From assembly GCA_025201805.1 (NCBI GenBank), contig MU619250.1, positions 272,425 through 336,424 on the forward strand: 64,000 nt of DNA. Reading direction: 5' to 3'. Both the position numbers and the translations under genes were made by a program. Origin of the DNA: Parasitella parasitica NRRL 2501 (taxonomy: Eukaryota; Fungi; Mucoromycota). Positions 567-44,900 of the stretch are shown here, piece after piece (position 1 is the first letter of the stretch; each line of letters begins with the position of its first letter). Under the pieces are notes generated by a model. It ran no database searches. It saw only the letters and a program-made list of their open reading frames with translations, and was not told where the DNA came from.

Positions 567-2242
567 TTAGACAGTATCACACCATCCGTTCACTGGTAAA
601 CATGATAGATATTTACAATTGGGACAGATGGTAGACAAATCAGAAGAGGTATAAAAGATACGCAAGAACACAACGTAGAGTATGATGATGACAACAAGGG
701 CAGCGATTCTCGTAATCCAGGCAAATATGATGGTACGGCGGGATGCAGCTCTTCGATTAGGTGCAAGTAAGGCACCAAGCAATAATCCCATAATTAACCC
801 ACCAATGTGAGCAAAATTATCAAGACCAGGCAGCAATCCCAATACTAAAGAGATGATGATGACAAATAATAACTTTACAAGTTCTCGGCCTGGGTTACGG
901 ATATCTCTCCATTGAACAAGTAGTTCGATCACTGTGTAACCGATAATACCAAACAATGCACCTGAACATCCCATAGAAGCTGTTTCAAAGGGTCATTAGT
1001 AAAAATGGGCCGTTATAAATATATTTATATATATCGATCCATCACACTTACAAACAAGAGGTCCAGCAAGCACAGCGCTAAGGATAAAGCCCCAAATCCC
1101 CGAAACAATGTACAGAATAGCGTAGCGAATGACACCCAAAGAACGCTCAATCTCGCTGCCTGTCGAAAAATGTGTAACCAGATTCAAAAGAATATGAACG
1201 AAACCAGCATGAAGAAAGATGGGCGTAAAAAACCTAAATCCTTGACTGGGCGGTTGCCCATTGAAACCCCCAAATCCACAGACTTGCTCAATTGTACAGG
1301 TTGATTCCAGCGATCGATAGCAATTTCCCAATGTAAAACTGGCTGGGTACTGAGCAATGTCTCGCATACAAGGCACAAACTTGCTTCCCATGTTAATCAA
1401 TGCCTATGAAACTTACTATGTCAGATAATTTGTGTATGGGTGTCTCTACTTAAATTGCTAATTACCATGTAATTGGGCCCAATCATGGGATTAAATGGGT
1501 TGGTCTGGATGACACTGCCTGAGAGTGTGTTGTTCCTGATGAGTTCATATACAAAGACTCCAATCATAATCACACCAGTTACCCAAGTGAATATTGCAAA
1601 TCTGGATCCTCCGCCAAACAAGTGTTTGTATACTGTCCCTCTTTGTTTGTGTGGCATTGGCTGAGGAAAACCACGGTTGCTATTTCCAGCTTCCAAGTTG
1701 CTGTAGTCTTTCGCCTGCTGATATCCTTTTAGCTTACCCATGAAAATATCAACTCGACTTTGATCTACTGCTTGTGGTGTTGGTGTTGACGGTGGTCCAT
1801 TCATACTGTAATCAGATGATAAGTTGTTGCTATCGTTTTGATTTCTTGTTTCGTAAAGCTGTATCTCTTCTGGCTGTTCACTTGGTGGGACAAAGCCTTT
1901 GCTTAGCAGGGCCCCTGTGGCTGGGGGAGTGTTTGATGCGTTATTGTATTGATCCTCTGCACTAAATGTTGGTCCGTACACCTCTGTTTTATCATGACTG
2001 TAGTTATCAGCCTCATGTACTTGCCTTCCAAGAGGCGAAGGTGATAGTGGCAATGGTGCTGATGTATTTGACAAGGCAGGAGATTGATATGGAGATGATC
2101 CAAATGAAGAAGTATCGTCATATACAGGTGTTGGTATAATTGAGGGTGATTTCGCAGCAAACCCGACGTGAGGAGAATTGGATGATGGCGTTTCATTTTC
2201 ACGAAATGGGTTAAAATCCTGGCTATTATTGTTGTTGTTCAT
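567..2242 (-). CDS. Rhomboid family intramembrane serine protease, 3 exons
   Basis: NPFNPMIGP, QGFRFFTPIFLHAGFVHILLN, catalytic GCSG and FAHIGG motifs, and C-terminal CPNCKYLSCLPVNGWC typical of fungal secretory-pathway rhomboids. Confidence 0.92.
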
Positions 2243-3744
2243 TTTGGCTAATATCAGACAGGCAGTGCAAAAGAAGAAAAGGGATAATGATGGAAAATAC
2301 CAGCTATTTAAGTCAACTAGGCTTAGAGATACAAACTATCGGAGCATGGAAGACACAGAAGATCAGTTATTAATAATAGCTAAAAATACATGTAACGATT
2401 TTATAAGTTTCTGCCGCCATTTCTTACTAATAATAGCATAAAAATAGCATTTCTATTTGCTGGTTCAAAGCGTCTGGTTCCTGTAAATATCTATAATAAC
2501 CATGTTGCTGTCCTTGGGGACCATAAATAGTCATCCATATGTTAGCGTTCATATTTTGTGCGACAGTTTTAACGACACTATTATTGATCTGAAATAAATG
2601 ACAGAATTCAATGAGCTCATGGACTCTAGCTAGCCAAAAAACAAACACACACAAAACAAAAAAGACATGAGAGTACACCCAAGTTCAAAAAAAAACTGTA
2701 TATAAATTACTTCATATACGATAACGACATGAATATTGTGAATCAACAGGAGCTATACTTAATAAAGCTAAGGTTATTAGTTGCATCTCTTTTCAAAAAT
2801 GGAGCGTTAATGCTGCTCTTGCGTCCATTGACGTAATAATGAATTTTTCAAGCCAGTTCAAGACGAATTTGAATACTGTATATCATAAATTATAGCCAAG
2901 CAAACGATGTTATGCGTGTAGGAAGAATATCTTGTCTAAATCACTCAAGTTGCTAAACAAGTCAAGGTCTATCAAGATACGTAGTAACCGCCAAGAAAAG
3001 TGTGATGCTAATCTATATTTAAATTTAGTCAAAGATGCAAAGTTAACCATAAATAACATCGATGCAAGGTTTGCCAGCGACTCGATAGCGCATGTATGTA
3101 ACCTAATATGTTAACAATACTTGCTGCCAATATTGTTTATTAGACTAAAAGACTAAAAATTGATATGAACGTTTTAATGGTAGATAAATATTGAACGGGC
3201 CTGGCTACATTGCTACAGCTGTTTGGATAATCACCATTTTAGGTATTATTTATGCTAACTATGGGCAATAGCAGATCATATCATCCCTCTCATCCCGTTA
3301 TTCACTGTGGATTAATGAATAAAATCATTACGACCTCGTCAGTCGTAGAGTGGATCAACGACGCTCTTTTACCTTATGCCATATGTATCTTATCCGACGG
3401 ACTCTCTCTCTCTCTCTCTCTCTCAATAACCTGTTTTCCCTCTCAAGATGTACAGCGCCCTCACCAGAAAGTTGTAATTTACAAACACCATTTATACATG
3501 TATGTCGCCGATAATCCAGTTTTTAATTTTTCCATTCTTTTAATCTTTTACCGTTTATCAAGGCCATAACAAAACAACAATGCAATTATGATGAATCACA
3601 CTAGCTGAATAATACTGACACCACCCAAAGGAAAGTAGGATAGCTCTGAAACTAGGGAATGTCTGCAACAATAGCAGTTTTATCTATTTCAATCTTGAAA
3701 GAAACTCATGGCCTTAGCCGAGTCATAGCGCTCTACTATATATA

Positions 3745-6322: not shown

Positions 6323-7378
6323 TATCCCTTTTTGATAAGTAAAGAAAGTAATTCACGGTCAATTTTTTTTTTATCAAGAGACAAACTACGGTGAAAAGAA
6401 ATCACTGTGGCGAAGCGAAGGTCGATTTTTTATGGGCTTCATTCTGATGGGGGGGGTGCACAGCGCGCGCGGGCTGTCTCACGACAATACTAATCAAAAA
6501 GTTTTGTTTTGGAAGGCTTTCATAAAGATCAAAAGCGGCTGGATTGGCAACATTTGATGGATTTATATGGCAATCCTAAATTCAACGTAGCAGAATTTCT
6601 TTGCAAATCTTCGATAATAGTTGTTGTATCTAATATTAAACGTCGCCAGTAATTCTATAATAGATAGAATCAATCATGAAATGACTTACACAAGAAAAAA
6701 TCTAGTTGGGTTCAACTTATCCTAAATGATGAAGCTAAACTTGATGACTCACGTTCAACACACTTGAAGTTTTGGAGAAGATACACTAAAGCTTATTTTG
6801 GTTTCCGAACTTCACATGCTTGCCGCACATAGTGAACATAAGGCATCTGTTGCTTCTATATTATGACCCTCCCTTCCGCATAAATGGCATGCATCTATTT
6901 TGAATCGCTCTTTATGAAAATCGCAAAATTTGTAAGCATACCGAAATTTATTGAAGCAGTGATTTTAAAGATAACGACAAAAAGTTTTGGAGCGCGTTTA
7001 GTAAGACGTAAATAGCTTGATTTGGGCATATTATGTTATCTTTTGTTAATGAATTAAACCTAGCGTTAGAAACATAGATATCGGAGCTTGTTAAAGTGGT
7101 AGTCTTTGCATGTAGATTTGCTGAAAAAAGAATTGTAATAAAGACCTTGCTAGATTTGTCGCCCTCGTGCAGATGCCAGAATTCAACCGGTAGCAGGATA
7201 AAATGAGTAGGTTATCTTGTGTAATTAAAATAGCTCCTAACATATTAAAGAGCTGAATCAATTTACGTTCTTCCATTTGAAAAAATGTGGATAACCTCTG
7301 TGATTATATAAATATGAAAAGCTGGTCTATTACTTAACCATTATTTTAATTGTCGCTATGCTAGCAGTACAAGCATTA

Positions 7379-9161
7379 TTAATACAAATCATCCTGGCTA
7401 CTATCACTACTACTACTACTTTCATCTAATCGCGAGCGCTGCCCTTTTGGATTATATCTGTTAACACTCTCAGAAAATAAAAGTGTTATGCTTTTCCTCA
7501 ACTAATTATCAATTAGCCTTTACGTTTAAATATCAATATTGTGTTTCTTACCGTTCTGATATGATTAGTCTGGAGCAAGTTTTCAAGTACATCTTTACTA
7601 CTGTTTGCTCTGTAACGTCTATCGTACACAAGATTTTTGACTTTCTGATACATATGAGTTTCGAAATGTTTAAATTCATGATAAATCAAAGCCTTTCTGT
7701 AGCATTCACTGCCGAGATAGTATGTTTCTGACTCTGATGCATCGTCTGAATAGAGCTTTATCGCAGTACTTGCTACTTTGTTTGCTCGACATGCTTCGCA
7801 TACAAGATCTGCAGTAGATGCTAAATGTTCAGTTTGCAACAGCCAATTGGGGTAGCTGTCAAGATCATCCTGTAGTCGGCATCATTACGATTGTGTGAGT
7901 GCACTGTTAAAACCTTATATTCGTATTTTTTACCTTAAAGTTGGGATACCAAACATCACTGGTGGCTATGGAATCTCTGTATCCTTTGACTCTCTTCATC
8001 ACAACATCTTTTGCTAACACGTATTTGGGTTGTGATGCTAGAATAGGTTTACGGTTAGATATTTAGCGCAGATCATCTCGTTTTCTTCATTTTGTCTCAC
8101 ATATATCAAAAACTGGGTTCAGTATGAGCTCGATCAGATACTGAATATAAACATCCATCTGCCGCTTAAACGACATTAGCTTCGCTTTGCTGAACTGGGC
8201 TAAAAAAATATATTGGTTTTAGTTGATGTAGCCACCACCATCTCTGAGCATTGAGTATAACTACCAGGAAGTTCTGCATGGGGAGCTTGATTTGTTACTC
8301 GTATGCCGTCAACAATATCATCATCGACGACAAACTCATCCTCAGTCTGATCCGAATCCTCCTCGTCTTCACTTGATGATACAGTTGTTCTGGAATTGAT
8401 GAATGTTTCGATTGGGCCACCACCCACTTTGTCGTATTGGGATAATTTGGACTTGCGATCTAAAGCAGATCTGTCAAATATAACCGTCTTGGCCATACAC
8501 TGCTTTAAATTACCTTTCAGTTTCTTTAAATTTTCGGTATATTTATGAACCCGTTTACCTCGAGTTCTCTCCTGCAGTATGTCTAGATTGTAAGCCATAT
8601 TACTATTTTTCATTCTGTCACTCATCATTAAAAGCCTGCCAATAACCTGATTTATCAAGAAAGTTCAAATCATCGTTTATATCATCATCTTGATGGTGGA
8701 AAGAGACGCATTAGATGTATCCCATGTAGTTTGCAAGTATCGGATTATACCTGAAGCGACGTTTATCACATGATCAGCTTCCATCTGGCTAAAATCCTGA
8801 GGTTTATCTTCTTCGTCACTGCTCTCTAGTATACGTCGCTTTAGTTTCTTTCTTCTCTTCGGCATAGCTTCCAAAACTGTATTTTCATCGCTGCCGATAT
8901 TCTCTTCATCGCTATCGAATATGACGGGCACTTTTTTCTTTTTAGGAAGAACTAGGGCATCAGGCTGATGTTCTTGGCTGCTATTCTGAAGGAGTGAGAT
9001 GAGGCTGTTTTTAGATTGACTACGGAAAATGGCCATTACTCTTTAATTTCTATATACTTGGAGGGCGTAAGCTTGGACGATTCTGGCTGCTGTTCCTGAC
9101 TAGACGATGTAAAGTAATTAAGCAGATTCTGCTGTTTCTTCATTGACCTTGTTTTTGTCAT
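7379..9161 (-). CDS. DUF4211/CCDC82-like protein, multi-exon
   Basis: Acidic/basic N-terminus, DDLNFLD..ILQERTRGKR, DEFVVDDDIVDG, C-terminal CEACRA..YYLGSECYRKALIYHEFKHF pattern. Confidence 0.7.
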
Positions 9162-9775
9162 TTTGAAACTTTATGGGAGAAAAAATGCAAATTGTGAAAA
9201 TTAAAAATCATCACACTGTATTTTTATATAGGCGGTAACGAGCCATTCACTAAAAACTGGCTTGTCTTCATTCATTTCCCAATAAACATTTAATCCGTTT
9301 ACATATAGTTAACCCTACTCTGACACATTCCTCTCTTTCCCAATTATGAGTTACACACTATTTTATTCCTCGAATTTAGAAAGATTTCCTGCCTCGAGGG
9401 GGTGTTGGCATATTATCATTTGATGGAGACATCATTCAGTCTTGCCATTTGTGCGTTGGCTACGGTCTACATTTAATGATCTAATTGCACTATTGTCAAG
9501 ATATAAATCGGCTGCAATGTATCATATTAAATAGTAATACAAGTAACAACTCGCATTCGATGGGTTAATTCATTAATCAAAGCAAAAAGAGAGTAGCGTA
9601 AACACTGGTAATTGCTCAGACTAAATCAGGCGCTGGTGTTACACTGAAGTGGTCCATTTGCCAAGATTATTGCCTAGTGTTTTCAGTCAGATGATCTCGT
9701 TTCTTGGTATAAATTCAGCCTAAAGCTACAAACTGAAAACTTTTTCCCTTTTTTTGGATACGATTTTATTGGAAA

Positions 9776-10486
9776 ATGAGTAATTTACGGTATAATCCTC
9801 ATCTGGAATTGCCTCCACCATCACCATCACCGCCACTACCACCACCACAACAACAACAACATCCTTCCTCTCCAAATTACCAGCAACTGCAGCAAGGATA
9901 TCAGCAGCAGCATATTCCCTCTGTTTATCCTAAATTACCTGCTCAGGACGAGCAGCCACCAAGCTACTCAGCTTCATCACCCAGTTATGCAAATATGCCA
10001 CAACCGCCTTACCCTCAATATATACCAAATCAGCAACCACAACCATACCCGTATCCTCAGTATCAACCACCTCCAAACACCCCTCCTGTCCCTCAAAACC
10101 AACAGCTCAACGGAGCAAGGCCTCCTGTAATGTTTTATGGCAGTATGGCACCACCTAATGTCAGCAACCCGCCTCAACAACAAGTGCCTTCACAACATAC
10201 AGTCCAGCCGGTCACATCGTTGAGGACAACATCTGATCTGGTACAATGTCCCCATTGCCAACAACTAGTTCAAACAGTTTTGGATTATGACTCTGGTTTA
10301 TGCACTGGTTTGTCAGTCGCAGGATTGTTTTTGGCTGGTTGTCATAGTGGAGGATGCCTGATTCCTTTTATTTTTCCATGGACAAAAGATGTCACTCATC
10401 ATTGCCCTTCATGCAAAGAGAAGATTGCAACATTCACAAGACTTGAAAGAGACACAAGAGTTACAGCACCACCCGCTGGTTTATAA
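9776..10486 (+). CDS. LITAF/SIMPLE-like zinc-ribbon protein, single exon
   Basis: Pro/Gln-rich N-terminus with PPSY motif, then CPHC - hydrophobic stretch - KDVTHHCPSC. Confidence 0.9.
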   Translation: MSNLRYNPHLELPPPSPSPPLPPPQQQQHPSSPNYQQLQQGYQQQHIPSVYPKLPAQDEQPPSYSASSPSYANMPQPPYPQYIPNQQPQPYPYPQYQPPPNTPPVPQNQQLNGARPPVMFYGSMAPPNVSNPPQQQVPSQHTVQPVTSLRTTSDLVQCPHCQQLVQTVLDYDSGLCTGLSVAGLFLAGCHSGGCLIPFIFPWTKDVTHHCPSCKEKIATFTRLERDTRVTAPPAGL

Positions 10487-10530
10487 TTTTGATCATGCTT
10501 ATTTATTTTCGTTTATACATACATAATTTT

Positions 10531-11814
10531 TTAAGCAGTTAAAACCTGATCAAATTCACCACTTTCAATCTAAAATAAAGACCCTTAGTTTTTATAACAT
10601 AAGCCAAGAGAAAATACCACCTACCATTTCCTTTACAATATCTAAACCACCCAGCAATTCGCCCTTGTAGAATAGCATAGGGAATGTTGGCCAATCTACA
10701 TGAGTTTTCATGCCTTGTCGAACATCATCATCTGATAAAATATCAAAATAGCCATATTTAACATGTCTATCTTTCAATAAAGCAACCATCTGTCTTGAAA
10801 ATCCGCAGCGAGGTTCGTCGGGTGTGCCTTTGATAAACACCATTACAGGCTGCTTTTCGATCAGTTCTTGAAGGCGAGTGCTGAGATCCTTTTCCTTGGG
10901 CAAAACGTCTCTAAATTCACCTGATTCGACCATTTCCTTGATAATGTCTAATCCTCCCATCAACTCTCCATTAACATAAACTTGAGGATAAGTTGGCCAA
11001 TCGGAATAAGCTTTCAAACCTGTAAATATTGTATTACTAATCGATCTGATTTGATAGACAGCATCTGAAAAATGTACCTTGACGAACGTCCTCATCTGCA
11101 AGAATATTGAACGAGCTATATTTGACCTCCTCTTTGCCTAGTATATCAACCAGTTGACGAGAGAATCCACAACGAGGCTACGCATTGTATTACTAATCAA
11201 TTCCAACAATCCGAAAGCAAATCTCTAACCTGTTGAGGAGTGCCTTTGATAAAAATCATCACAGGAGCGCTATTTACAAGAGCCTTGAGGCGAGCGTTCA
11301 AATCTTTGACGGGCTTTGCTCCATTATCGGTGCCAGCCGCTGAGGGACTAGCAAACTTGTTCAACACACCTTTGGCATGTTTATTAACGGCGTTTGTTAA
11401 TTCAGCAGCCTTTGCACCCTCGATTTTGTCAGCGATTTTGCCACCCTAGCCATCCAGATTTTTAATATTATACACAGGCAAACAAATCCAAGAATCAGCT
11501 TTTTACCTTGAGGACAATAAAAGTAGGGACAGCAGAAATCTCAAACGTTTCAGAGATATCAGGGTATTCTTCGGCCTCAATCTAAATTGCTCATAATCTG
11601 TTAGGCCTACTGGAGCACTCTTTGATATCGCCCACACACTTACCTTGAGGAACTGAAGAGCAGGGTATTTACCAGCAAGTTCGGCAAAAACTTCATTCAT
11701 TTGTTGACAGGGTTCTGCCCAAGAGGCCCAAAAGTTCAAGACATAGACAGTGTCTTTCTTGGAGAGAAAATCTCCAAATTGTTCATCAGAGCTGATATCT
11801 AACAAATTAGACAT
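10531..11814 (-). CDS. GRX3: Monothiol glutaredoxin Grx3/PICOT type (Trx + 2 Grx domains)
   Basis: Trx domain FWASWAEPC; two Grx domains each with KGTP..PRCGFS, WPT(Y/F)P and GGLDI. Confidence 0.93.
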
Positions 11815-12069
11815 GTCGTGTATTGCTATTAAAGTAAAAAGTGAGGGGTTGATCAAAAGAGAAACAAAAAGTGTAAAAAAAAAAAGAAAAAGATTTTTGT
11901 ATTAGATTATGATTGGAATACTGTACATTAACAATGTGATTGGTGATTTCGCAACAGATCAGAATCTGCTGTAATAATGATACAGGTTGAATGGCATATG
12001 TAGGAATTTAAACAAGCTTTGGTTGTAGGCGATGGAGTCCAAGCGAGAAAAGACACAATAACTCGCAAA

Positions 12070-12070
<1 letters not shown>

Positions 12071-12123
<53 letters not shown>
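12071..12123 (+). repeat. Poly(A) mononucleotide tract (~53 nt)
   Basis: Seen directly. Confidence 0.9.
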
Positions 12124-12124
<1 letters not shown>

Positions 12125-12503
12125 ACAATAGGAAATCTCTTTGATGATATTTCGTAAAATAATTTTGAAAAAATGGAATACAATAGAGTTCACCTTTCAG
12201 AGGGTCTGCCTCTAATCAGACATTGTAGCTTCAAAAATTAAAAACATTAGAGTGGATTGGTCGGTATAAATCATAGTAAAGGCATTCAAGCACTAGAAGC
12301 AGTTAGGCAAACTCGAGTAATCATTCATGGATGGTGTGGACATCTCCTAATTCAATGAAACTTTTGCAGCAAGCAACCCGTCGAAAAAAAAAAAAAAAGA
12401 ATTCCGAGCATAGCAACACGAATGATATCTTTTGTTTGAAATGTCTATTTACATCGCACTGATATGGATTTCTTTATTGCTTCAATTATTGATTAAATAT
12501 GTT

Positions 12504-12826
12504 CTATACAGAGGAAGCTGAACCCTTGACGCTTCTAACAATCTCGGCAACAGCAAAGTGCTTCTGTTTACTCAAAGGTCGGCAGGCTTCGATACGCACA
12601 ACATCACCCAGCTTGCAAACTTCTTTCTCGTCGTGGGCAAGGTAATTTTTATGTGTTTTGATAGTCTATTGCAATTCTGGATTAGCATATAAACAACCAG
12701 GGGTGAGCGAGCATTGCAAATTCATACCTTGAGCACGACAGGATGAAGCTTTTGGCTGGTAACCTTTACTTTGATAGTCTTTTGCATAGCGTTGCTAACA
12801 ACCATACCAATGAAGTTCTGTCTCAT
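12504..12826 (-). CDS. MRPS17: Mitochondrial ribosomal protein uS17m, 2 exons (absent from ORF track)
   Basis: Spliced [28 protein letters not shown]|[43 protein letters not shown] matches the bacterial-type S17 signature. Confidence 0.92.
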
Positions 12827-12996
12827 GTTTGCTGTTGTTGTTGTTTTTTTTTTTGATATGGAAGAGCAAGAATGAATGTTGATGGGTAGCAAATGTTAAT
12901 GAGCTGGAAAAAAAAAAAGTGACAGGGATATTGCTATCACCGGAAATTCGACATGTTGCAGAATCCTTCCTTGTTTGACCTCATTCACACCAGACC

Positions 12997-13413
12997 ATGC
13001 TCCCTACACTGATTCGATTTCATAAGGCACCTCCTATGCCTAAATTCTTCCAACAGGGCTTGACTTTAGATCATGTATGTATACTAACAGAACCCACACC
13101 ATTGCCTATTGACAGCAGCATACACACCTAGTTTTTACTACGAGGCCAAGTAATCTCTCTATACCGACAAATTGTACGCTGCACCAAAGGCATGGAAAAA
13201 AATGACGCCAAAGAGTTGATACAATGGGCTAGAGCCGATTTTGAACGCCATCGCAACGAGAAAAGTATTGTAAGTTAGCATCTGTCACAGACTCTGTATT
13301 GCAGCTGACACTGTGGACTCCAGGATCATATCAAATCACTGATTTCGTCGGGCAAACATCAAATGCATTCATTACAGAGTTCAGTTTCTTTGGCGCATAC
13401 ATCCAAACAATAA
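12997..13413 (+). CDS. LYRM2: LYR-motif protein 2-like (mitochondrial), 3 exons (absent from ORF track)
   Basis: Spliced ..LTLDH|FLLRGQVISLYRQIVR..ELIQWARADFERHRNEKSI|DHIKSLISSGKHQ..; LYR motif plus downstream F. Confidence 0.85.
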
Positions 13414-34169: not shown

Positions 34170-34203
<34 letters not shown>

Positions 34204-37022
34204 ATAGGGTCGAGGGCACTGCGATTATTGTAGCTGTGCTAGCCGTGATTCTAACAAATGCCGTAAACGATTATCAGAAAGAAGCTCAATTCAAGAAACT
34301 GAATGCCAAAAAAGAAGATCGAGTGGTCAAGGTGTTGCGAAGTGGCCGCGAGCAACAAATCAGTGTGTATGATGTCAACGTTGGCGATGTGCTGATGTTG
34401 GAACCTGGAGACATCATTCCAGTCGACGGCTTGTTTCTGGGAGGCCATAACATGGCTTGCGATGAGTCGTCTGCCACTGGTGAATCAGACACGATGAAGA
34501 AGAGGACGTACGGTAAGGGGGATTGTTTTATTCTGTCTGGCTCCAAGGTGCTGGAAGGCGTTGGTCGTGCTGTCATTGTTGCTGTAGGAGAAAACTCCTT
34601 CTTTGGCAAGACGATGATGTCAATGCGTGGTGAGGAAGCCGAGGGCACTCCTTTGCAGATGAAGCTGGACACACTGGCTGAACAGATTGCAAAGATGGGT
34701 TTCGCTGCTGCTATTTTGATGCTGCTGGCTCTCGTCATCAAGTATTTCGTCACTGCTGCTCTTGCACCAGAGTTCCCTCCTGCTGCTGATGTCGCTGCTG
34801 CCATGATCTCTATTGTAATTCAAGCAATAACCATCATCGTAGTCGCTGTGCCTGAAGGTCTACCGATGGCCGTCACCATGGCTCTGGCCTTTGCCACTAC
34901 GCAGATGCTTAAAGATAGTAATCTTGTCCGCGTCTTGGCAGCTTGTGAAACAATGGGTAACGCCACAGCGATCTGCTCGGACAAGACGGGAACTTTAACT
35001 CAGAACAAAATGACTGTAACTGAGGGCACTCTGGGCGAGGAATCCTTTGAGTCCCAAGATGCCGCCAAAGACTGGTCCAAGAAGGTCGACCGCAAGAAAG
35101 TGCTCTCTATTGTCTATGAAACTATCGCTCTTAACTCTACTGCGTTTGAAGGAAAAGATGAAAACGGCAACGCTGACTTTGTCGGCTCAAAGACGGAATG
35201 CGCTCTTTTAGGCCTCACCAAGCACTTGGGCAGTTCGTACGACGATCTGCGTCATGATGCTACCATCACCAAAGTATATCCCTTTGCCTCCAAGCGCAAG
35301 ACTATGACCACCATCTCTGAAATCAAGGAAAATTCTGCCACCTCTGCTACCGATGGCAACTACCGAGTCCATGTCAAAGGCGCATCTGAAATTGTACTCG
35401 AGTCTTGCAAATACTACATTGACAATAAAGGCGAAGCTCAAGAGCTGGACGAGAAAGCGTCCTCCAAGTTCAACGACATCATCTCTTCATATGCTGATAA
35501 AGCCCTCCGCACTATTGCCTTGGCTTATCGTGACATTTCCGAGTCCGAGTACAAAAAGGTGAGTGATGAGGAGCCTCCTCTCGAAGAGCTGACCTTGATT
35601 GGCATTGTTGGCATTATGGATCCTTTGCGTCCTGGCGTCGTTGAATCAGTCAGCGCGTTTAGGCAAGCCGGCGTCTTTGTTCGTATGATTACTGGCGATA
35701 ATTTGAATACTGCTAAAGCCATCGCTCGAAATGCTGGTATCTTGACAAAGGGCGGTGTTGCTATGACTGGTCCTGAATTGCGCGCCATGTCTGTTGAAGA
35801 GCAGCGCAAGGTGATTCCTCGCTTGCAAGTGTTGGCTCGTTCGTCTCCCACTGATAAGACCATTGTTGTAACCCGTCTTCAAGAGCAAGATCAAGTTGTG
35901 GGCATGACTGGCGACGGCACTAACGATGGACCTGCCTTAAAGTTGGCCGATGTCGGTTTCAGTATGGGCATTGCCGGCACCGAAGTTGCAAAGGAGGCTT
36001 CTGATATTATCCTGATGGACGACAACTTTAACTCTATATTGAAGGCTTTAATGTGGGGCCGTGCTGTGAATGATGGCGTTCGCAAGTTTTTGACCTTCCA
36101 GCTGACGGTCAACATTGCTGCTGTTGTCTTGTCTTTTATCTCTGCTATCGGCTCTGAAAATGCGGAGAGCATCCTAAGTGCTGTTCAGTTGCTGTGGGTC
36201 AACTTGATTATGGACACTTTGGCTGCTCTTGCCTTGGCTACTGAGCCTCCTACCGAGGATCTGCTTCATCGTAAGCCCATTAGCAAGTACGCCCATTTGA
36301 TCAACTACCGTATGGCCAAGATGATTCTGGGCCAGGCCATTTTCCAAATCATCATCAACTTGATTGCCATCTACGTGGGCCCCCGTATCTTCCATTTGGG
36401 CGACACTCCCTACGACCAAGAAGTTTTGCGCACCCTTGTCTTTAATATCTTTGTCTTTTTGCAAGTTTTCAATGAAATCAACTGCCGACGCATCGACAAC
36501 TCCATCAATGTCTTTAAGGACATATTTGACAACTGGATTTTCATTGCCGTCCAAGTCGCTGTTGTGCTGGGTCAATGGTTGATTGTCACGTTTGGTGGTA
36601 TTGCTTTCAAGACGGTGCCCTTGACTGGCCACCAATGGATTGTTACCGTCCTGATCGGCTCCTTGTCTATCCCTGTAGGCACCATCATCCGCTTGATTCC
36701 TGACTGTGGCTGCGAACGTCGTTTCAATGAAGAAGCAAAGCCTCTGGCCAGCTACTCGCGTATGACCTGGGAAGGTGCCATTGGTGATGTCCGTGATGAA
36801 TTGCGCGTCTACTCCTTGCTGCGTCGTAATCGCGGTAGTAAGTCGCGCGACATTCCTGCTCGTTCCAATACTCAACACTCGAATCCCGAAAGCATGGCCT
36901 TCAGCGCTCCCAATGCCAACTATGGCGCCACCAGCCATGGCAACAAGAACAGGTTCGCAGACCTCGTAAAGAATGCTCAAAAGTATCAACAGCAAAATGC
37001 GAATCACAATGACGGCAACTAA
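33604..37022 (+). CDS. PMC1: P2B-type Ca2+-ATPase (PMC1/PMCA-like)
   Basis: TGES, VAVPEGLP, ICSDKTGTLT, KGASE, TGDN, GDGTNDGPAL, QLLWVNLIMDT. Confidence 0.96.
34172..34201. repeat. (GT)n microsatellite in a PMC1 intron
   Basis: Seen directly; the source of the spurious CVCVCV translation. Confidence 0.9.
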
Positions 37023-38378: not shown

Positions 38379-38713
38379 TTATAATCTATCGCGAGAGTAA
38401 CTATTGTATCCAAGAGAGATGTTAATATTGGCTCGACTGAAAAATACAAATGTAAAACAAGTACTTACGTCTTGGCGAACTTTTGGTTGACGGTCATGAA
38501 CTTGACTTGAGTGTCTTGATCAATGTTTTGCCAAGGGTAAGGGTTGTTGGTACGGTCCCAAACAACTTCAGGGCCTCTGGCGAGACGGGTGAGGTAGTAA
38601 CCAGCTAAACCACAAGCGGAACCAACAGTGATGTAGATGGGGATAATTTCATGCTTGTACCAGATAGACCAGAAAGACTTTTTGGCAGTGTTAGCAGCGG
38701 CACCAGCAACCAT
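38379..38713 (-). CDS. NDUFA4: NDUFA4/MLRQ-like respiratory subunit, 2 exons
   Basis: EIIPIYITVG..YYLTRLARGPEVVWDRTNNPYPWQ..QKFAKT|YSRDRL*. Confidence 0.9.
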
Positions 38714-39943
38714 TTTTTGTTTTTGTAGGACGAAAGAGAGGAAGAATAAGATATTTAGCTTGGTTGCCTGGATGTTTTGATTTATATAGGCCTTTAGATC
38801 TGATTTAAAATTCAGGTCCTTTCACCTTCCAGCCCCCCCCCCCACATTCAAATGTAATTGGTAACGTTAATTTTTTGAGCCTGAAAAATGAATCGAATTT
38901 TTTGATCTAAACAAGCCTGGCCTCGATACCCAATTGAAATGTTATTCCTTTGTCGACATTTTACCGACAAGCATGGTCCGTCTAAATTATTGGTTTGGGA
39001 TAGTTTGGATGGGGTTGATTATTATAAAGGATCTGTGGCCTTACCCAAGTATGAGTAGGAGTGTGCCGTCAAAAAAAAAAAAATCTATGCACATAGATTA
39101 TGCTGCTTACTGTAATCCAATTGACCGTCGATATGTTTGGACATATGCTCCTTTTTTTGTTTGTTTTTGTGCTTGATCAACTCAGATTGAAAATCTGATA
39201 AAAAAGAATCAAAGCCTCCCCTCCACTATTGAACCGAATCCGTGAAAAAGACGTTATAGGGACCCCCCCCAATTCTTTTGAAATAAAAAAAAAAAGCTGT
39301 TTTTATCAATGTCGCTTTAAGATGTGTTTACTTTGTATTTAGCCGCTTAAAATACTCTGCTAGATTTACCTCAACATTGGTGTAATAATATGCTTATGGC
39401 AAGTGCTCAGATTTGGTGTAACACCTTAATGGGATTGAAAGATGGTTACAAAAGTGCGCTGCTGAATTAAATACCAAATCACAAAAGTACCACAAGTGCC
39501 TTTAAAAAAATTAAACAAGAATGAACCTGTGCATTTTCTTTATATCCACAGGAAAAGAGTAGATGTTCAGCGCATAATCATTTAGCAGATGGAAATAATA
39601 GAAAAGCCGATGATGCCGCATGAGAAGAAACGAAGACAATTTGCAATGAGTCATATGAAATTGTAAAGTGCCTGAAAATTGTCATTTGCACTAGTTGATA
39701 TTGTTTTCAGAAAACAACAGGAACAAAGCCTTGGTCAAAATCTATATACATGAATGGTATCTCTGTTTGAAATTTACGATAGATGAAGTTGGAAAGACCA
39801 CATACGTACATAAAGAAGCATTATTATCAAGTGGAGAGACATGCATCTTTGGTACATTATGTGATCAAGCTTTTTGCTAATCCAGAATTAGCCCTGAGAA
39901 GCCTCTTTTAATGATACTAACAGTATACAGCGGCTCCACTCCC

Positions 39944-40110
39944 AAAGTTCGTTTTCCAAAGTGCTAAATTCGCTTTTGTCGTCGACTGAAATTTGCTTTT
40001 TTCGCAGCCGAAAATTCGCTTTTTGATTGGTCAAAGTTCGTTTTTGTAAATCATTCAAATTCGCTTTGGCATCGCCCAAAGTTCGTTTTTACATTTGAAA
40101 AGTTCGCTCT
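39944..40110. repeat. Subterminal array of 8 AAA(G)TTCG(C/T)TTT motifs, 21-23-bp period (mirrored at ~41582-41748)
   Basis: TTCG/TTTG cores at 39948, 39969, 39992, 40015, 40037, 40060, 40082 and 40103. Confidence 0.85.
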
Positions 40111-40131
40111 TAAAAAATTACAAGATATTGA

Positions 40132-40416
40132 CTAGAGTGATTTTTTATTAAAGCATTTTTCAAAATTATTAAGAGAATGATTGGCAGTGTTATAAAAGGC
40201 CTTTCTGCTGACACTTTCACTGGCTTCGACAATTCTGGTTTTCAAGTCTTGTGTTTCTGTAAATTCACTTTGCTTAACCGAATTCTTGATAATGGACCAG
40301 AAGTTTTCAACAGGATTGAGCTCAGGGGAATATGGGGGAAGATATATAGCTCTATAACCTCTCATTTCGATTAAGTTAGTGACACTATCTGAGGTATGGA
40401 TCGGCGCATTATCCAT
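40132..40416 (-). pseudogene. Tc1/IS630-type (DDE_3) transposase C-terminal fragment, left arm
   Basis: MDNAPIH...YLPPYSPELNPVENFWS; 34 residues between D and E; lacks the first Asp and the DNA-binding domain. Confidence 0.9.
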
Positions 40417-40561
40417 AGTAGAGGACGTCGTAGAGGACGTCGTCCTTTTTCAAGCTCAGTCTGCGTCGAAGTGGACGTCGTAGAGGACGTCGTAGAGGAC
40501 ATCGTCCTTTTTGTTTTTCTAAACAATTTATAATTCTTTACAAAAAAAAATTGGAACACTA

Positions 40562-40692
40562 ATGAACACCATAACACGCGAGAAAGCGATTTGTATGTTC
40601 TACTGCGAACCATACAGCAAGGCTCGTGCTATAGACCTTTTAAACGGAATTGAAAATATTGGTCTTGATGTTTGTTACAAAGATGATCCCAC
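40562..40692 (+). CDS. Small cargo ORF start (inward-facing); C-terminus lies in the unreliable loop
   Basis: MNTITREKAICMFYCEPYSKARAIDLLNGIENIGLDVCYKDDPT, with an identical copy at 41000-41130 on the minus strand. Confidence 0.5.
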
Positions 40693-41275
40693 AAAACCAA
40701 GCTTACACTCAACAAAAAACATTGACCAAAACCCACACAAAAACAAAACAGACAAAAATAAAAAAACAAAAAAGAAAAAAAAAAAATCAGAAAAAAAAAG
40801 ACAGTAGAAAAAAAGAAAGCATCAGAAAACACCGCAAAGCAAAAAAACTACCCAAAAACACAGGTTATAATAATCGACAAGAGCACAAAAGACTACATCA
40901 AACAAAGAGAAAAGTTCATGCGTGCTACTTTCAAGCAAAGATCGATACGGATGATACCCGTAAGAATAAAAAGATGCAGAGCAAAATAAAAGAGGCGCCG
41001 TGGGATCATCTTTGTAACAAACATCAAGACCAATATTTTCAATTCCGTTTAAAAGGTCTATAGCACGAGCCTTGCTGTATGGTTCGCAGTAGAACATACA
41101 AATCGCTTTCTCGCGTGTTATGGTGTTCATTAGTGTTCCAATTTTTTTTTGTAAAGAATTATAAATTGTTTAGAAAAACAAAAAGGACGATGTCCTCTAC
41201 GACGTCCTCTACGACGTCCACTTCGACGCAGACTGAGCTTGAAAAAGGACGACGTCCTCTACGACGTCCTCTACT

Positions 41276-41560
41276 ATGGATAATGCACCGATCCATACCT
41301 CAGATAGTGTCACTAACTTAATCGAAATGAGAGGTTATAGAGCTATATATCTTCCCCCATATTCCCCTGAGCTCAATCCTGTTGAAAACTTCTGGTCCAT
41401 TATCAAGAATTCGGTTAAGCAAAGTGAATTTACAGAAACACAAGACTTGAAAACCAGAATTGTCGAAGCCAGTGAAAGTGTCAGCAGAAAGGCCCTTTAT
41501 AACACTGCCAATCATTCTCTTAATAATTTTGAAAAATGCTTTAATAAAAAATCACTCTAG
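41276..41560 (+). pseudogene. Tc1/IS630-type (DDE_3) transposase C-terminal fragment, right arm
   Basis: Same 94-aa fragment as 40132-40416 except F/L at one site. Confidence 0.9.
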
Positions 41561-41942
41561 TCAATATCTTGTAATTTTTTAAGAGCGAACTTTTCAAATG
41601 TAAAAACGAACTTTGGGCGATGCCAAAGCGAATTTGAATGATTTACAAAAACGAACTTTGACCAATCAAAAAGCGAATTTTCGGCTGCGAAAAAAGCAAA
41701 TTTCAGTCGACGACAAAAGCGAATTTAGCACTTTGGAAAGCGAACTTCGGGAGTGGAGCCGCTGTAAAAACTGGTGTTTTATTTTTATTTTGTTTTTGTT
41801 TTTTTTTCTTTAGAAATGCAAATAAACAAATGGAGGGTAAGAAAGTGAAAAAGGCAAGAGTATATTGTATGTATTTGGAAAAGGAAAAAAGCAAAGAGAG
41901 ACAGGATTATCACTTTTTTTTTTTTTTTTTTTGATTGAAAAA

Positions 41943-44900
41943 TTAATTGTCAGAGGTTAGAGGCATTGGCAATGATAGCGATGGTGAAATGACAGCCTCA
42001 TTTACATGTAAACCAGTCTTGCGTCCTCTGTTACGGCTGTAGCCAGAAGCATAATGATGCTGTTGTTGATAGCTGCCTCTACCGCCTGCTGTAACTCTCC
42101 CCGCGCCCTTTGCTGGTGAGCCATCCGTCACAACAGACCATGGGCGAGCCGCTCCAAGTGCGCCACCGCCCCCCCGTTTACGATTTGAATTACCTCTACC
42201 ATTGGTTTGACAAATGCTAGGATATCTGGAATGTTTATGGCCATTTTTTGTATCGGTACTCAATGCGTGCTCATTGTTAAAAGGTCGGCGATGCTGCCAG
42301 GACAACGTAGGATAGTAGATGGGTTGCACATTTTCCGTTCCCGCCAGCGGATAAGGTACTGCATATTGATTACTGGATAAATAAGCTTGCTGAGGCTTGA
42401 GGTACACACCGATAGGACGGTGCTGCTGTTGGTGATGATGTTGAGATGGAGGACCTGATTCGAGAGGAGAGAAAAAGCACAGCTAGTCAATTATACAAAG
42501 CCATGTCATCAACATTCGCTATCAAAACTTACCTTCAGGTTCGACACTTTTAGAAGAATTAACGCTACCAGGACATGTTGGCTGACCAGGATATCGATAC
42601 ACTAATACAGGAAAATGCCTGTTTACATGCATTTTTCTTTGCTGCGGAGGATGTGATTTGGACAGTGCAGATGCTGTACTATTACTGTTGCTAGTTACAG
42701 TCGTTGCAGTCGTAGCGACGCTGATAGCCTCCTCCTCCTCCACTTGAATTGCAGTGTTAGTTTGCCCCATCAGGGTAATTTCCTCGTCAGATTCTTCCGT
42801 ATCCACCATGAAGCTCATATTAGCAGGTTTTCTAGCAGCAAGTTTATCGATGAAATCAGGGAATATGGGCGAAGACGAGTTCTTTAGCAAGTTTGTCAAC
42901 CGAGTCTTTTTCGAAAGGATGGCCTTTTTTCCTGGCTCGTGTTTTTTCAATATCTCGATCACAACTGGGTTTTCTTCATTGTCTTTGTGATGGCTACTTG
43001 CAGCCACTCTGTCTCTGCTACTTTTGGCGCTGGTAGCAGTATCTCTACGACCTCCTCGACTACTACCGCCGTTTTGAGTGTTTCGCCCAGATCGTTTTTG
43101 ATTGCTGAAATTTTCATCACGAGTCCAGCCACCACGATTAGGAGTGCGACCATTCATTATAGTTGCAGGCATGGAACCCCACTCTTCGTCCTCGTAATTC
43201 AACACTTCAACATGCTGTTTTTGCTGCGCTTGTTCAGACAACTCGGACTTTTGCTGGCATTCTCGCTTCATCTCCTCCTCTACCTCCTTGACTCTTTTCT
43301 CTCGGTTCGACATATCGATCGCATTTTTCTCGGCTACCGTCTCTTGCAGTCTGACAGCAAAAGAAACCCAATCGGCGGAGGTGTTTTTCTGCTCAGCAGC
43401 AGCTGCTGGATCGGTTCTGATCGCAGAGACGTATTTTTCCCATTTCTCGTCATCGTCTGTCACTGATTTACTTGGCTTACCCTCCCCCTTTTCTTTCTTG
43501 TCGCCGGCGCGAGTCGGTTTGGGCTCTTTCTTTACGATGGCAACTGGTTTCGTTTCCTTTTTGAGTATTTGCGTAGGTGCGGGCAAGTGTTCACGGGAGG
43601 GAGATGTTTTAGGTTCGCTGTTTACAGCAGCCGCAGTCGCAGTGGTCGTTGCCGGTTTAGGTGCTTGTTTATTGGCAGCTACCAAATTCCAAGGCTTACT
43701 GGTATCCGGGATCTTGAACGATAGTGGCACTGCCTTGGACGCTGTTGCTGGAGCTGCATGAACAGGAGCCGTTTTTAACGGCGATGATGGTGATGATGAG
43801 GATGGTGGTGGTGGTGGTGACGATGATGATGACGAGGATGTATTGCGTTTAGCTGTCGCTGGTGTCTCAGCAGATGTCTCTACAGTCGATTTATCAGCAG
43901 CAGGCTTTTTTAATATCGTCATTGTCTTCAATTCGCTTTGCTTGGCAGCCAATGCGTCTGCCTTTTGCTTGGCGCGTTCGGCAACAGCCTTGAATTCTGC
44001 CTCTTGCTCTTCTAATCGTTTCTTGGCGCGTTCCGCGGCAGTCAGCATGAGACTTTTCTGCACTGCAGTGATTTCCTCACCACTATCAGTTGTGGCGACG
44101 GTGATAGGGTCAGGTGTGATTTGCAACGGATTGCCGCTATTTTCTTCACGAGAGTGATCTGATCTGAAACTTTGATCTGATAAACGCCGAGATCTAGGAA
44201 GAAAACCGGCGTGGTGGTATGATCCGTTGTCATGCTTCCTGTCGTAGCTAGATCTTCTATTTCCGTAATGTGGTTGCTCCGTGTTGTCTCGTCGAGTGGA
44301 TAGCGGCTGGGCAGTTTTACTAGTCCATCTGTCATTTGTACCTGAAGCAGACAAATTGCGTCGTTCGTAAGTTCCCTCTGTGCTAGCGCGCCTACTGTTG
44401 TAGCTTGCATTATTGTATCGGGAACTATACCCGTGATCCTCAGAACGACGATAAGATTTGTAATGAGGGTGGGGATGCTGGTTATGGTGGCTTTGGTTGT
44501 GATGCTGGTGATCGCTGTTGTCATGATGGTGGTGATATTGCTGCTTTGCAGGGTAACTTCTATCGTAATCGTCCGTAAAACGCTCCGAAGGTAAAACCGG
44601 ATCTGCAGCCTTGGAAGCAGCAGCAGCAGCTGAAGACGGACGACTGCCTGTGCTGGAAGAATCGGATTCCACTCGAATCTTTGTACCATCTTCGAATTCG
44701 ACCACGTCCACAGAGAATTCGTCCAGATCCTCACTCACCATCTGCTCTGCATGTTAATGACCTTGACAACCCAACACTACTTTGACGGCTTCTTACCTCG
44801 TCCCATGATATGTGGTTTGGATCTGACGAAGCATACATCAAGTACTCATCCTAAGTTATACATTAGTGCATCAGAGCTAAAAAGAAGAAAAAAAGCTAGC

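Follow-up and report, generated by a model that had tools for sequence, protein, structure and literature searches.

The 64,000-nucleotide stretch of the Parasitella parasitica NRRL 2501 genome analysed here (contig MU619250.1, positions 272,425 to 336,424 of the forward strand, hereafter the window; C14 in our numbering of an assembly of 32.8 Mb and 450 contigs) carries a TA-flanked palindromic element of 1837 bp (~1.84 kb, window 39928-41764). This element is probably a dead, single-copy, non-autonomous fold-back derivative of a mirror-ended Tc1-type lineage that bears a second gene, here termed ORF2 (open reading frame 2), in place of a working transposase. An earlier sequence-only reading of the window had proposed a non-autonomous Tc1/IS630-type derivative, flanked by TA, whose two 3'-type ends came from mirroring a single end, and our analysis supports this view of its build.

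A repeat search finds one long inverted repeat in the window, with arms at 39926-40692 and 41000-41766 that lie 307 nt apart, each comprising 765 bp plus the TA (767 nt) and 99% complementary to the other. Compared base by base, the arms differ at exactly four positions (39944/41748, 39952/41740, 40197/41495 and 40405/41287), all four of them transitions, which leaves the two halves 99.5% identical over their outer 767 bp, while the flanks beyond the TA are unrelated (3 of 14 positions match). The earlier description of the arms, their four transitions, TA borders and unrelated flanks was therefore exact. Identity between the arms breaks off sharply at the inner as well as the outer edge, and an inverted repeat of such length and identity cannot have arisen by chance. 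The TA at 39926-39927 and that at 41765-41766, both evident from the sequence and the arm comparison, correspond to the Tc1/mariner target dinucleotide and form a putative target duplication.

Read from the outside inwards, each arm opens with a terminal repeat region of ~205 bp that represents a 3'-type end (left, 39928-40131, minus strand, assigned from repeat families and from its first 30 nt, which equal those of a Rhizopus element; right, 41561-41764, plus strand, assigned from the arm comparison and the Rhizopus terminus). It begins CAGCGGCTCCAC and contains about eight subterminal copies of a 12-15-nt motif, AAAGTTCG/AAATTCGC; in the right region the outermost of these repeats, a predicted binding site, has two derived substitutions. 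There follows an outward-reading transposase stump of 94 codons (40132-40416, minus strand; 41276-41560, plus strand) that matches Pfam DDE_3 (PF13358, E 5.5e-17) over profile positions 85-145 of 146. Its translation retains the second D at residue 2 and, after the 34 intervening residues of a DD34E motif, the E at residue 37, but the first D and everything upstream of it, including the DNA-binding part, are missing. As only the last 94 residues of the transposase are left, and no complete DD34E enzyme is encoded, the element is non-autonomous. Next comes a junction and ORF2 upstream region (40417-40561 and 41131-41275, delimited by repeats and by the Rhizopus comparison) that contains 12-nt tandem units, in which 40417-40520 and 41172-41275 hold a 74-bp duplication of these units that is absent from the Rhizopus copies, with short G+C palindromes and then a T run. 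The arm ends with the first 44 codons of ORF2, reading inward from starts at 40562 on the plus strand and 41130 on the minus strand (40562-40692 and 41000-41130, from ORFs and relatives); the left copy stops at the conserved motif CYKDDPT, which marks the inner edge of the identical arm. ORFs and Pfam DDE_3 thus confirm that every arm pairs an outward D34E transposase half with an inward ORF start, as had been read from the sequence.

Two simpler accounts of this anatomy can be set aside. The inner arm is not the 5' end of an internally deleted element, since there are no end motifs inside it, and the arms do not stem from two independent insertions in opposite orientation, as 276 bp of non-transposase sequence are common to both and the centre consists of one sequence and its mirror copy. 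Nor is the element a miniature inverted-repeat transposable element, a class of less than ~800 bp and high copy number, being 1837 bp long and present once.

The mirrored nature of the 307-bp centre is not evident from the centre itself. Direct self-comparison shows no symmetry (24.8% identity in register), and the palindrome becomes visible here only through the Rhizopus sequence, where both halves align, ungapped and in register, to one and the same ORF2 segment, which runs from the end of exon 1 into the start of intron 1. The left half (40693-40851, plus strand), A-enriched and comprising the remainder of exon 1 and the intron start, is 70% identical to the Rhizopus ORF2 (z 12.5), and the right half (40851-40999, minus strand), a mirror copy of the same segment, is 53% identical (z 11.5). 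From the arm edges the in-register homology extends over 159 and 149 nt, which add up to the full 307 bp, and both halves are also ORF2-like as protein, with scores of 28.0 and 21.5 bits where 200 shuffles reach at most 9.2 and 10.9. Because both halves are homologous to one ORF2 segment and between them fill the spacer, the element is a complete palindrome of ~2 x 920 bp with its turning point in ORF2 intron 1. This homology rules out a loop of foreign or filler DNA. An A-rich repeat family is likewise ruled out, as the genome-wide matches are plain poly(A) tracts: the genome has many uninterrupted poly(A)/poly(T) tracts of ~60-90 nt or more (loci L014-L023), and these explain all matches to the centre (window 40739-40818).

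The build of the element is older than the window copy. The closest relative of ORF2, protein P0003, is encoded on Rhizopus stolonifer contig L077, in which a TA is followed by 30 of 30 nt identical to the left terminus of the window element, a shortened terminal repeat, 14 stump codons, the same junction of stump and 12-mer units, and a complete ORF2 with introns. A Rhizopus delemar contig (L080, 1638 bp) is 100% identical to L077 over 1463 bp and has an inverted second arm at its far end, giving a Rhizopus element of ~1.8 kb in which 146-bp inverted arms, stopping ~35 bp before the ORF2 ATG, surround a full ORF2. By BLAST the left arm and centre of the window element are colinear with this Rhizopus element up to window 40829. 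As the junction and terminus are the same in the Rhizopus elements, both the two-3'-end build and the joining of stump to ORF2 predate the window copy, which inherited them. Were the terminus no better conserved than the rest of the arm (82-92% identical), 30 identical bases of 30 would be expected only ~1-2% of the time, which suggests that the terminus is under constraint. A separate observation concerns the two Rhizopus labels: the complete identity between L077 5553-7015 (stolonifer) and L080 1-1463 (delemar), of which 902 bp recur in a Logan contig (also L081), could reflect very recent transfer, contamination or mislabelling.

These relatives bear directly on the proposal of the sequence-only reading that the element is young, i.e. 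a one-off foldback that formed from an ordinary autonomous Tc1 element upon insertion at this site or shortly before, and that is still mobilisable. The four differences in 767 nt, the TA on both sides, the unrelated flanks and an intact left terminus whose 30 nt equal those of the Rhizopus copy would all fit such an origin. Against it, the stump/ORF2 junction is common to Rhizopus elements that also possess two such ends, and the centre is heavily diverged (30-47%, versus ~10% for the arms), and a young one-off is accordingly unlikely. The same mirrored build recurs in Gilbertella persicaria, where the gap-free contig L079 has a palindrome with ORF2 units at ~6470-13010. Its arms, 3244 nt long, 99% complementary and 210 nt apart as called by the tool (the true outer edges being nearer 6470 and 13010), each contain a fragment of a transposase and a short ORF2 N-terminal gene that converges with an ORF2 C-terminal part, and their outer edges are not like Tc1 termini.

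The independent Rhizopus and Gilbertella assemblies also make it highly unlikely that the window palindrome is an assembly artefact, in which one transposon end was traversed twice by the assembler. Such an error might be entertained, as the Parasitella assembly is scaffolded, with N runs of 10 to ~1600 nt, and was probably built from short reads, and as a copy of the right junction adjoins a gap on another contig. A doubly traversed end would not, however, have acquired four arm-specific differences, which by-eye comparison with the Rhizopus and family copies suggests are split as two derived changes in each arm, or an asymmetric centre whose halves are differently diverged homologues of one sequence.

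The 32.8-Mb assembly has one copy each of the entire element, the inner arms and the centre, and a genome-wide search with the arms, in which further foldback copies or an autonomous parent might have been expected, found none. Only the outer 491 bp of the arm match other loci, at no more than 69-72% DNA identity (C74, C2 and C87), so that a young one-off would have no close parent here, and a solo end relic at C61 is 79-91% identical to the outer arm. The window end can be aligned with those of C74, C2 and C61, all with a common terminal GGTGGAGCC.CTG followed by TA, and with subterminal repeats, which places the window element and these copies in one family; its termini are those of family members encoding DDE_3 transposases, as in Tc1/mariner elements. 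At the protein level the closest transposase genes reach 72% identity in C74, where the gene runs into a gap, and 65% in C87, where it is apparently frameshifted, and the C2 copy is an ordinary internal-deletion derivative. In none of eight loci checked does an intact transposase adjoin a window-type terminus, which again speaks against a recent origin from an autonomous element and leaves no candidate partner for mobilisation in trans in the assembly, where gaps could hide one. The suggestion that the element could still be mobilised in trans consequently finds no support: it is present as a single copy, and the nearest transposases are distant and broken or interrupted by gaps. Exact-protein look-ups of the window ORFs in other assemblies returned no record. 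As regards mobility of the lineage, the single copy here is set against relatives that have the identical 30-nt terminus at another locus in Rhizopus.

Other Tc1-like sequences of this genome deserve mention. The element in C88 (locus L032, C88:123666-126938, element at ~1258-3062) is canonical and TA-flanked, with terminal repeats of ~200 bp and an uninterrupted 441-aa DDE_3 transposase ORF; its subterminal repeats differ from the window type, and it may be active. A large number of Tc1-like transposase genes come in pairs of opposite orientation, spaced 2-8 kb apart within arms of 469-2151 bp that are 99-100% identical (L061, C46:210854-217180; L062, C25; L059, C66; L060, C85; also C128, C29, C30 and C38), and many such pairs have transposon ends as their outer edges. 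In L061 the arms each comprise a complete element and ~500 bp of inner flank, with the transposon end as outer arm edge, and several Tc1 subfamilies seem to consist of only one such pair. Finally, at C28:71914-72018 (L070 ~1466-1565), in what appears to be an intron of a gene that by eye is XPG/FEN1-like, a T run and 20 N are followed by a 63-nt stretch with 97% identity to window 41746-41808, spanning the last right-arm bases (with the arm-specific G), the TA and ~43 nt of the right flank of the window element. This stretch could derive from a minus-sense transcript reading into the element, as a truncated retrocopy, or from gap-side mis-assembly.

The second gene proves to be widespread. The 102-aa open ORF at 40822-41130 (minus strand), which takes in the right half of the centre, has protein-level relatives elsewhere in the Parasitella genome with E down to 3e-20, mostly in convergent inverted pairs, and an exhaustive search yields a family of 55 representative proteins at E <= 0.001, in which all named relatives are from Mucorales (Rhizopus, Gilbertella, Sporodiniella, Benjaminiella and Hesseltinella). 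Full-length members have ~300-420 aa, spliced relatives being taken as the proteins that the searches supplied. When the genome is searched with one relative, P0030, a short N-terminal ORF2 copy is found facing a full-length ORF2 in eight places, namely C56, C15, C29, C209, C3, C326 and, with an interrupted gene, C37 and C170; at C22 there are only two short ORF2 copies, as in the window. Many representatives (P0001, P0002, P0004, P0005 and similar) are themselves just ~54-130 aa long and consist of the ORF2 N-terminal domain, several with a tail like Y-H-Q-Y-P-x-L-L-K, and such short forms may represent a small conserved gene rather than debris.

A Pfam search assigns the ORF2 relatives to no family and gives no Resolvase (PF00239) match at E <= 0.1. 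The AlphaFold (AF2) model of P0030 has a mean pLDDT (predicted local distance difference test) of 80.6. For its residues ~203-362 the top 13 structural (VIA) matches are all catalytic domains of the serine recombinase family (Z 7.0-9.8, root-mean-square deviation 2.6-4.4 Å, 90-141 residues aligned), Foldseek matches Sin, gamma-delta, Tn3 and TP901-1 with probabilities of 0.93-0.99, and residues 85-177 resemble an RFX winged helix (Z 6.0-6.4). Compared with the PDB, the ORF2 family profile matches resolvases weakly but in register (E 0.09-0.9). In the model residue 206 aligns with resolvase residue 1, which sets R213 and S215 on catalytic residues 8 and 10, and the motif G-Y-x-R-K-S is present in six of the seven aligned ORF2 sequences that cover this region. 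The arginines of the D-R-x-x-R motif are missing from the family, which has L-D-x-A-G-L-T-T-N instead. The model thus suggests that full-length ORF2 combines a winged helix with a serine-recombinase-like domain; as the D-R-x-x-R motif and a Pfam Resolvase match are lacking and the PDB profile matches are weak, we call it recombinase-like and not a member of the family. On each side the window element keeps ORF2 codons 1-44 and ~50 degenerate codons, and none of the recombinase-like domain. The start of a ‘non-transposase ORF’ noted in the sequence-only reading is indeed present, but this label falls short of what it is, the N-terminus of a conserved Mucorales family with serine-recombinase-like full-length members.

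These data suggest a course of events. In the ancestral build, intact in Rhizopus, both arms would be copies of the same 3' Tc1 end and transposase stump, bracketing a single ORF2. In the window copy the piece between the Tc1 end and a break within ORF2 intron 1 would then have been copied backwards onto itself, creating a palindrome of ~2 x 920 bp with two identical 3'-type ends and losing ORF2 beyond exon 1. A palindrome that turns inside ORF2 intron 1 is the signature of such a fold-back copy at a break, and this explains the loss of the ORF2 body. As mechanism we infer a hairpin or template switch at the break, followed either by integration at TA or by formation in place. The outer 767 bp would since have been homogenised recently, or protected by pairing.

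Several considerations weigh against this fold-back derivation. In an assembly that is scaffolded and gapped, it is the assembler that set the phase of the four arm differences and the direction of the centre, and a single copy with no empty site at hand is compatible with integration as a unit as well as with formation in place. The centre has diverged from Rhizopus three to four times more than the arms, which is unexpected under a simple neutral history and needs an extra assumption: the first 131 nt of ORF2, which lie in the arms, are 90% identical to Rhizopus, compared with the 70% and 53% of the centre halves. In addition, the right centre half is closer to the tails of short ORF2 proteins from other genera than to the Rhizopus tail, a likeness that could mean that it derives from an older duplicated short copy.

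The changes in the centre are biased. Counting substitutions relative to the Rhizopus homologue and expressing them on the plus strand of the window, we find that positions with Rhizopus A have hardly changed (0 of 70 in the left half, 1 of 35 in the right), while most of those with T (26/35 and 47/70) and with G (14/23 and 13/22) have. The change is to A in 30 of 47 cases on the left and 36 of 70 on the right, and T is never gained. In both halves the plus strand therefore gains A and loses T, a bias that follows the chromosomal strand and not the orientation of the ORF, and there is no edge-to-centre gradient of divergence. Of the bases thymine is the chemically inert one, and where a base is lost the new strand tends to receive A in its place. 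We infer that the minus strand of an unpaired centre may have been exposed as single-stranded DNA, whether because one replication template folded into a hairpin or because minus-sense read-through formed an R-loop. Alternatively, the contrast of arms and centre would arise if the arms had been overwritten from a less diverged source.

The arms had also been thought a ready source of double-stranded RNA able to silence the element's own transposase family. Any transcript crossing the element would form a 767-bp stem, and the neighbouring minus-strand gene (41943-44741, of low complexity and with no Pfam match) has its 3' end ~180 nt from the right end of the element and points into it, so that read-through past 41943 might supply one. 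In Mucor lusitanicus, moreover, small RNAs arise from Mariner copies and the repression of one subfamily depends on RNAi (RNA interference; PMC9963178). Suitable targets are scarce: among the fetched loci the longest exact arm match to another transposase gene is 20 nt, none reaching at least 21 nt, and exact matches of 28-32 nt are confined to two short end relics, C61 and C34, which would be the sole targets in trans. A present role as a hairpin-RNA or small-RNA locus is hence quite unlikely, and silencing of its own transposase family gains no support from the sequence. As far as the assembled sequence can tell, there is no living family in this genome for such a hairpin to silence. The genes around the element are ordinary, and on its other side lie a gene for a B12D/NDUFA4-type complex I subunit (38465-38713, minus strand; Pfam PF06522, E 8e-19) and an ORF that by eye is P-type ATPase-like (34173-37022, plus strand).

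Long-armed or foldback derivatives of Tc1/mariner elements are known (PMC3814204), as are Tc1/mariner shells with other genes (PMC3627910). The Tc7 and CeleTc-type derivatives of Caenorhabditis elegans are non-autonomous, with long inverted arms, Tc1-family outer termini and TA targets, and simple internal deletion does not account for their origin (PMC3814204). The window element is likewise non-autonomous, with long inverted arms, Tc1-type termini and TA flanks; unlike them, its arms also bear the C-terminal stump of a transposase and, from a second gene, the 5' part, and it is present as a single copy with no autonomous partner found in the assembly. Mariner elements carrying Fanzor1 (PMC3627910) similarly have Tc1/mariner termini and TA flanks around a non-transposase gene. 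The ORF2 cargo, in contrast, is winged-helix and serine-recombinase-like and not a homologue of TnpB/Fanzor, and both ends of the window element are copies of the same 3' end. With the mirror-image Tc1 pairs of this genome (C46, C25, C66 and C85) it shares a second end that is a backward copy of the first, but unlike them it has lost almost all of its cargo and is a complete palindrome. Two papers (PMC4058570, PMC6188088) describe an inverted domain order for the IS607 TnpA, with the DNA-binding part before the catalytic domain, and IS607 elements that are without terminal inverted repeats and make no target duplication. Full-length ORF2 likewise puts a DNA-binding part before the catalytic domain, and the structural matches of P0030 include the catalytic domain of an IS607-like TnpA (Z 7.1). 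In contrast to IS607 as so described, ORF2 elements have Tc1-type ends and TA flanks, and ORF2 has neither the Pfam Resolvase match nor the D-R-x-x-R arginines. Our literature search found no paper on serine-recombinase-like genes in Mucorales transposons, and the recombinase-like identity of the cargo family, the complete palindrome of the window copy and the strand-specific decay of its centre appear to be new.

A bolder proposal, which we regard as improbable, is that Mucorales harbour an undescribed class of hybrid transposon, mobilised in trans, whose Tc1-type ends both derive from one end and which carries a serine-recombinase-like gene of IS607 order with its 5' region in the arms. That protein, or hairpins at breaks in its gene, would repeatedly build mirrored ends, and the strand-specific decay of the centre would be the footprint of a DNA hairpin in vivo.

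By itself the window copy is an ordinary relic of a dead transposon that lies between genes. It nevertheless provides one compact example of how a mirrored transposon end makes a two-ended element, and ties this build to a lineage across Mucorales genera, whose recurrent second gene can now be identified as encoding a winged-helix and serine-recombinase-like protein. If the strand-tied mutation pattern of the centre stems from hairpin extrusion, it would be rare natural evidence for the decay of a long palindrome in a eukaryote.

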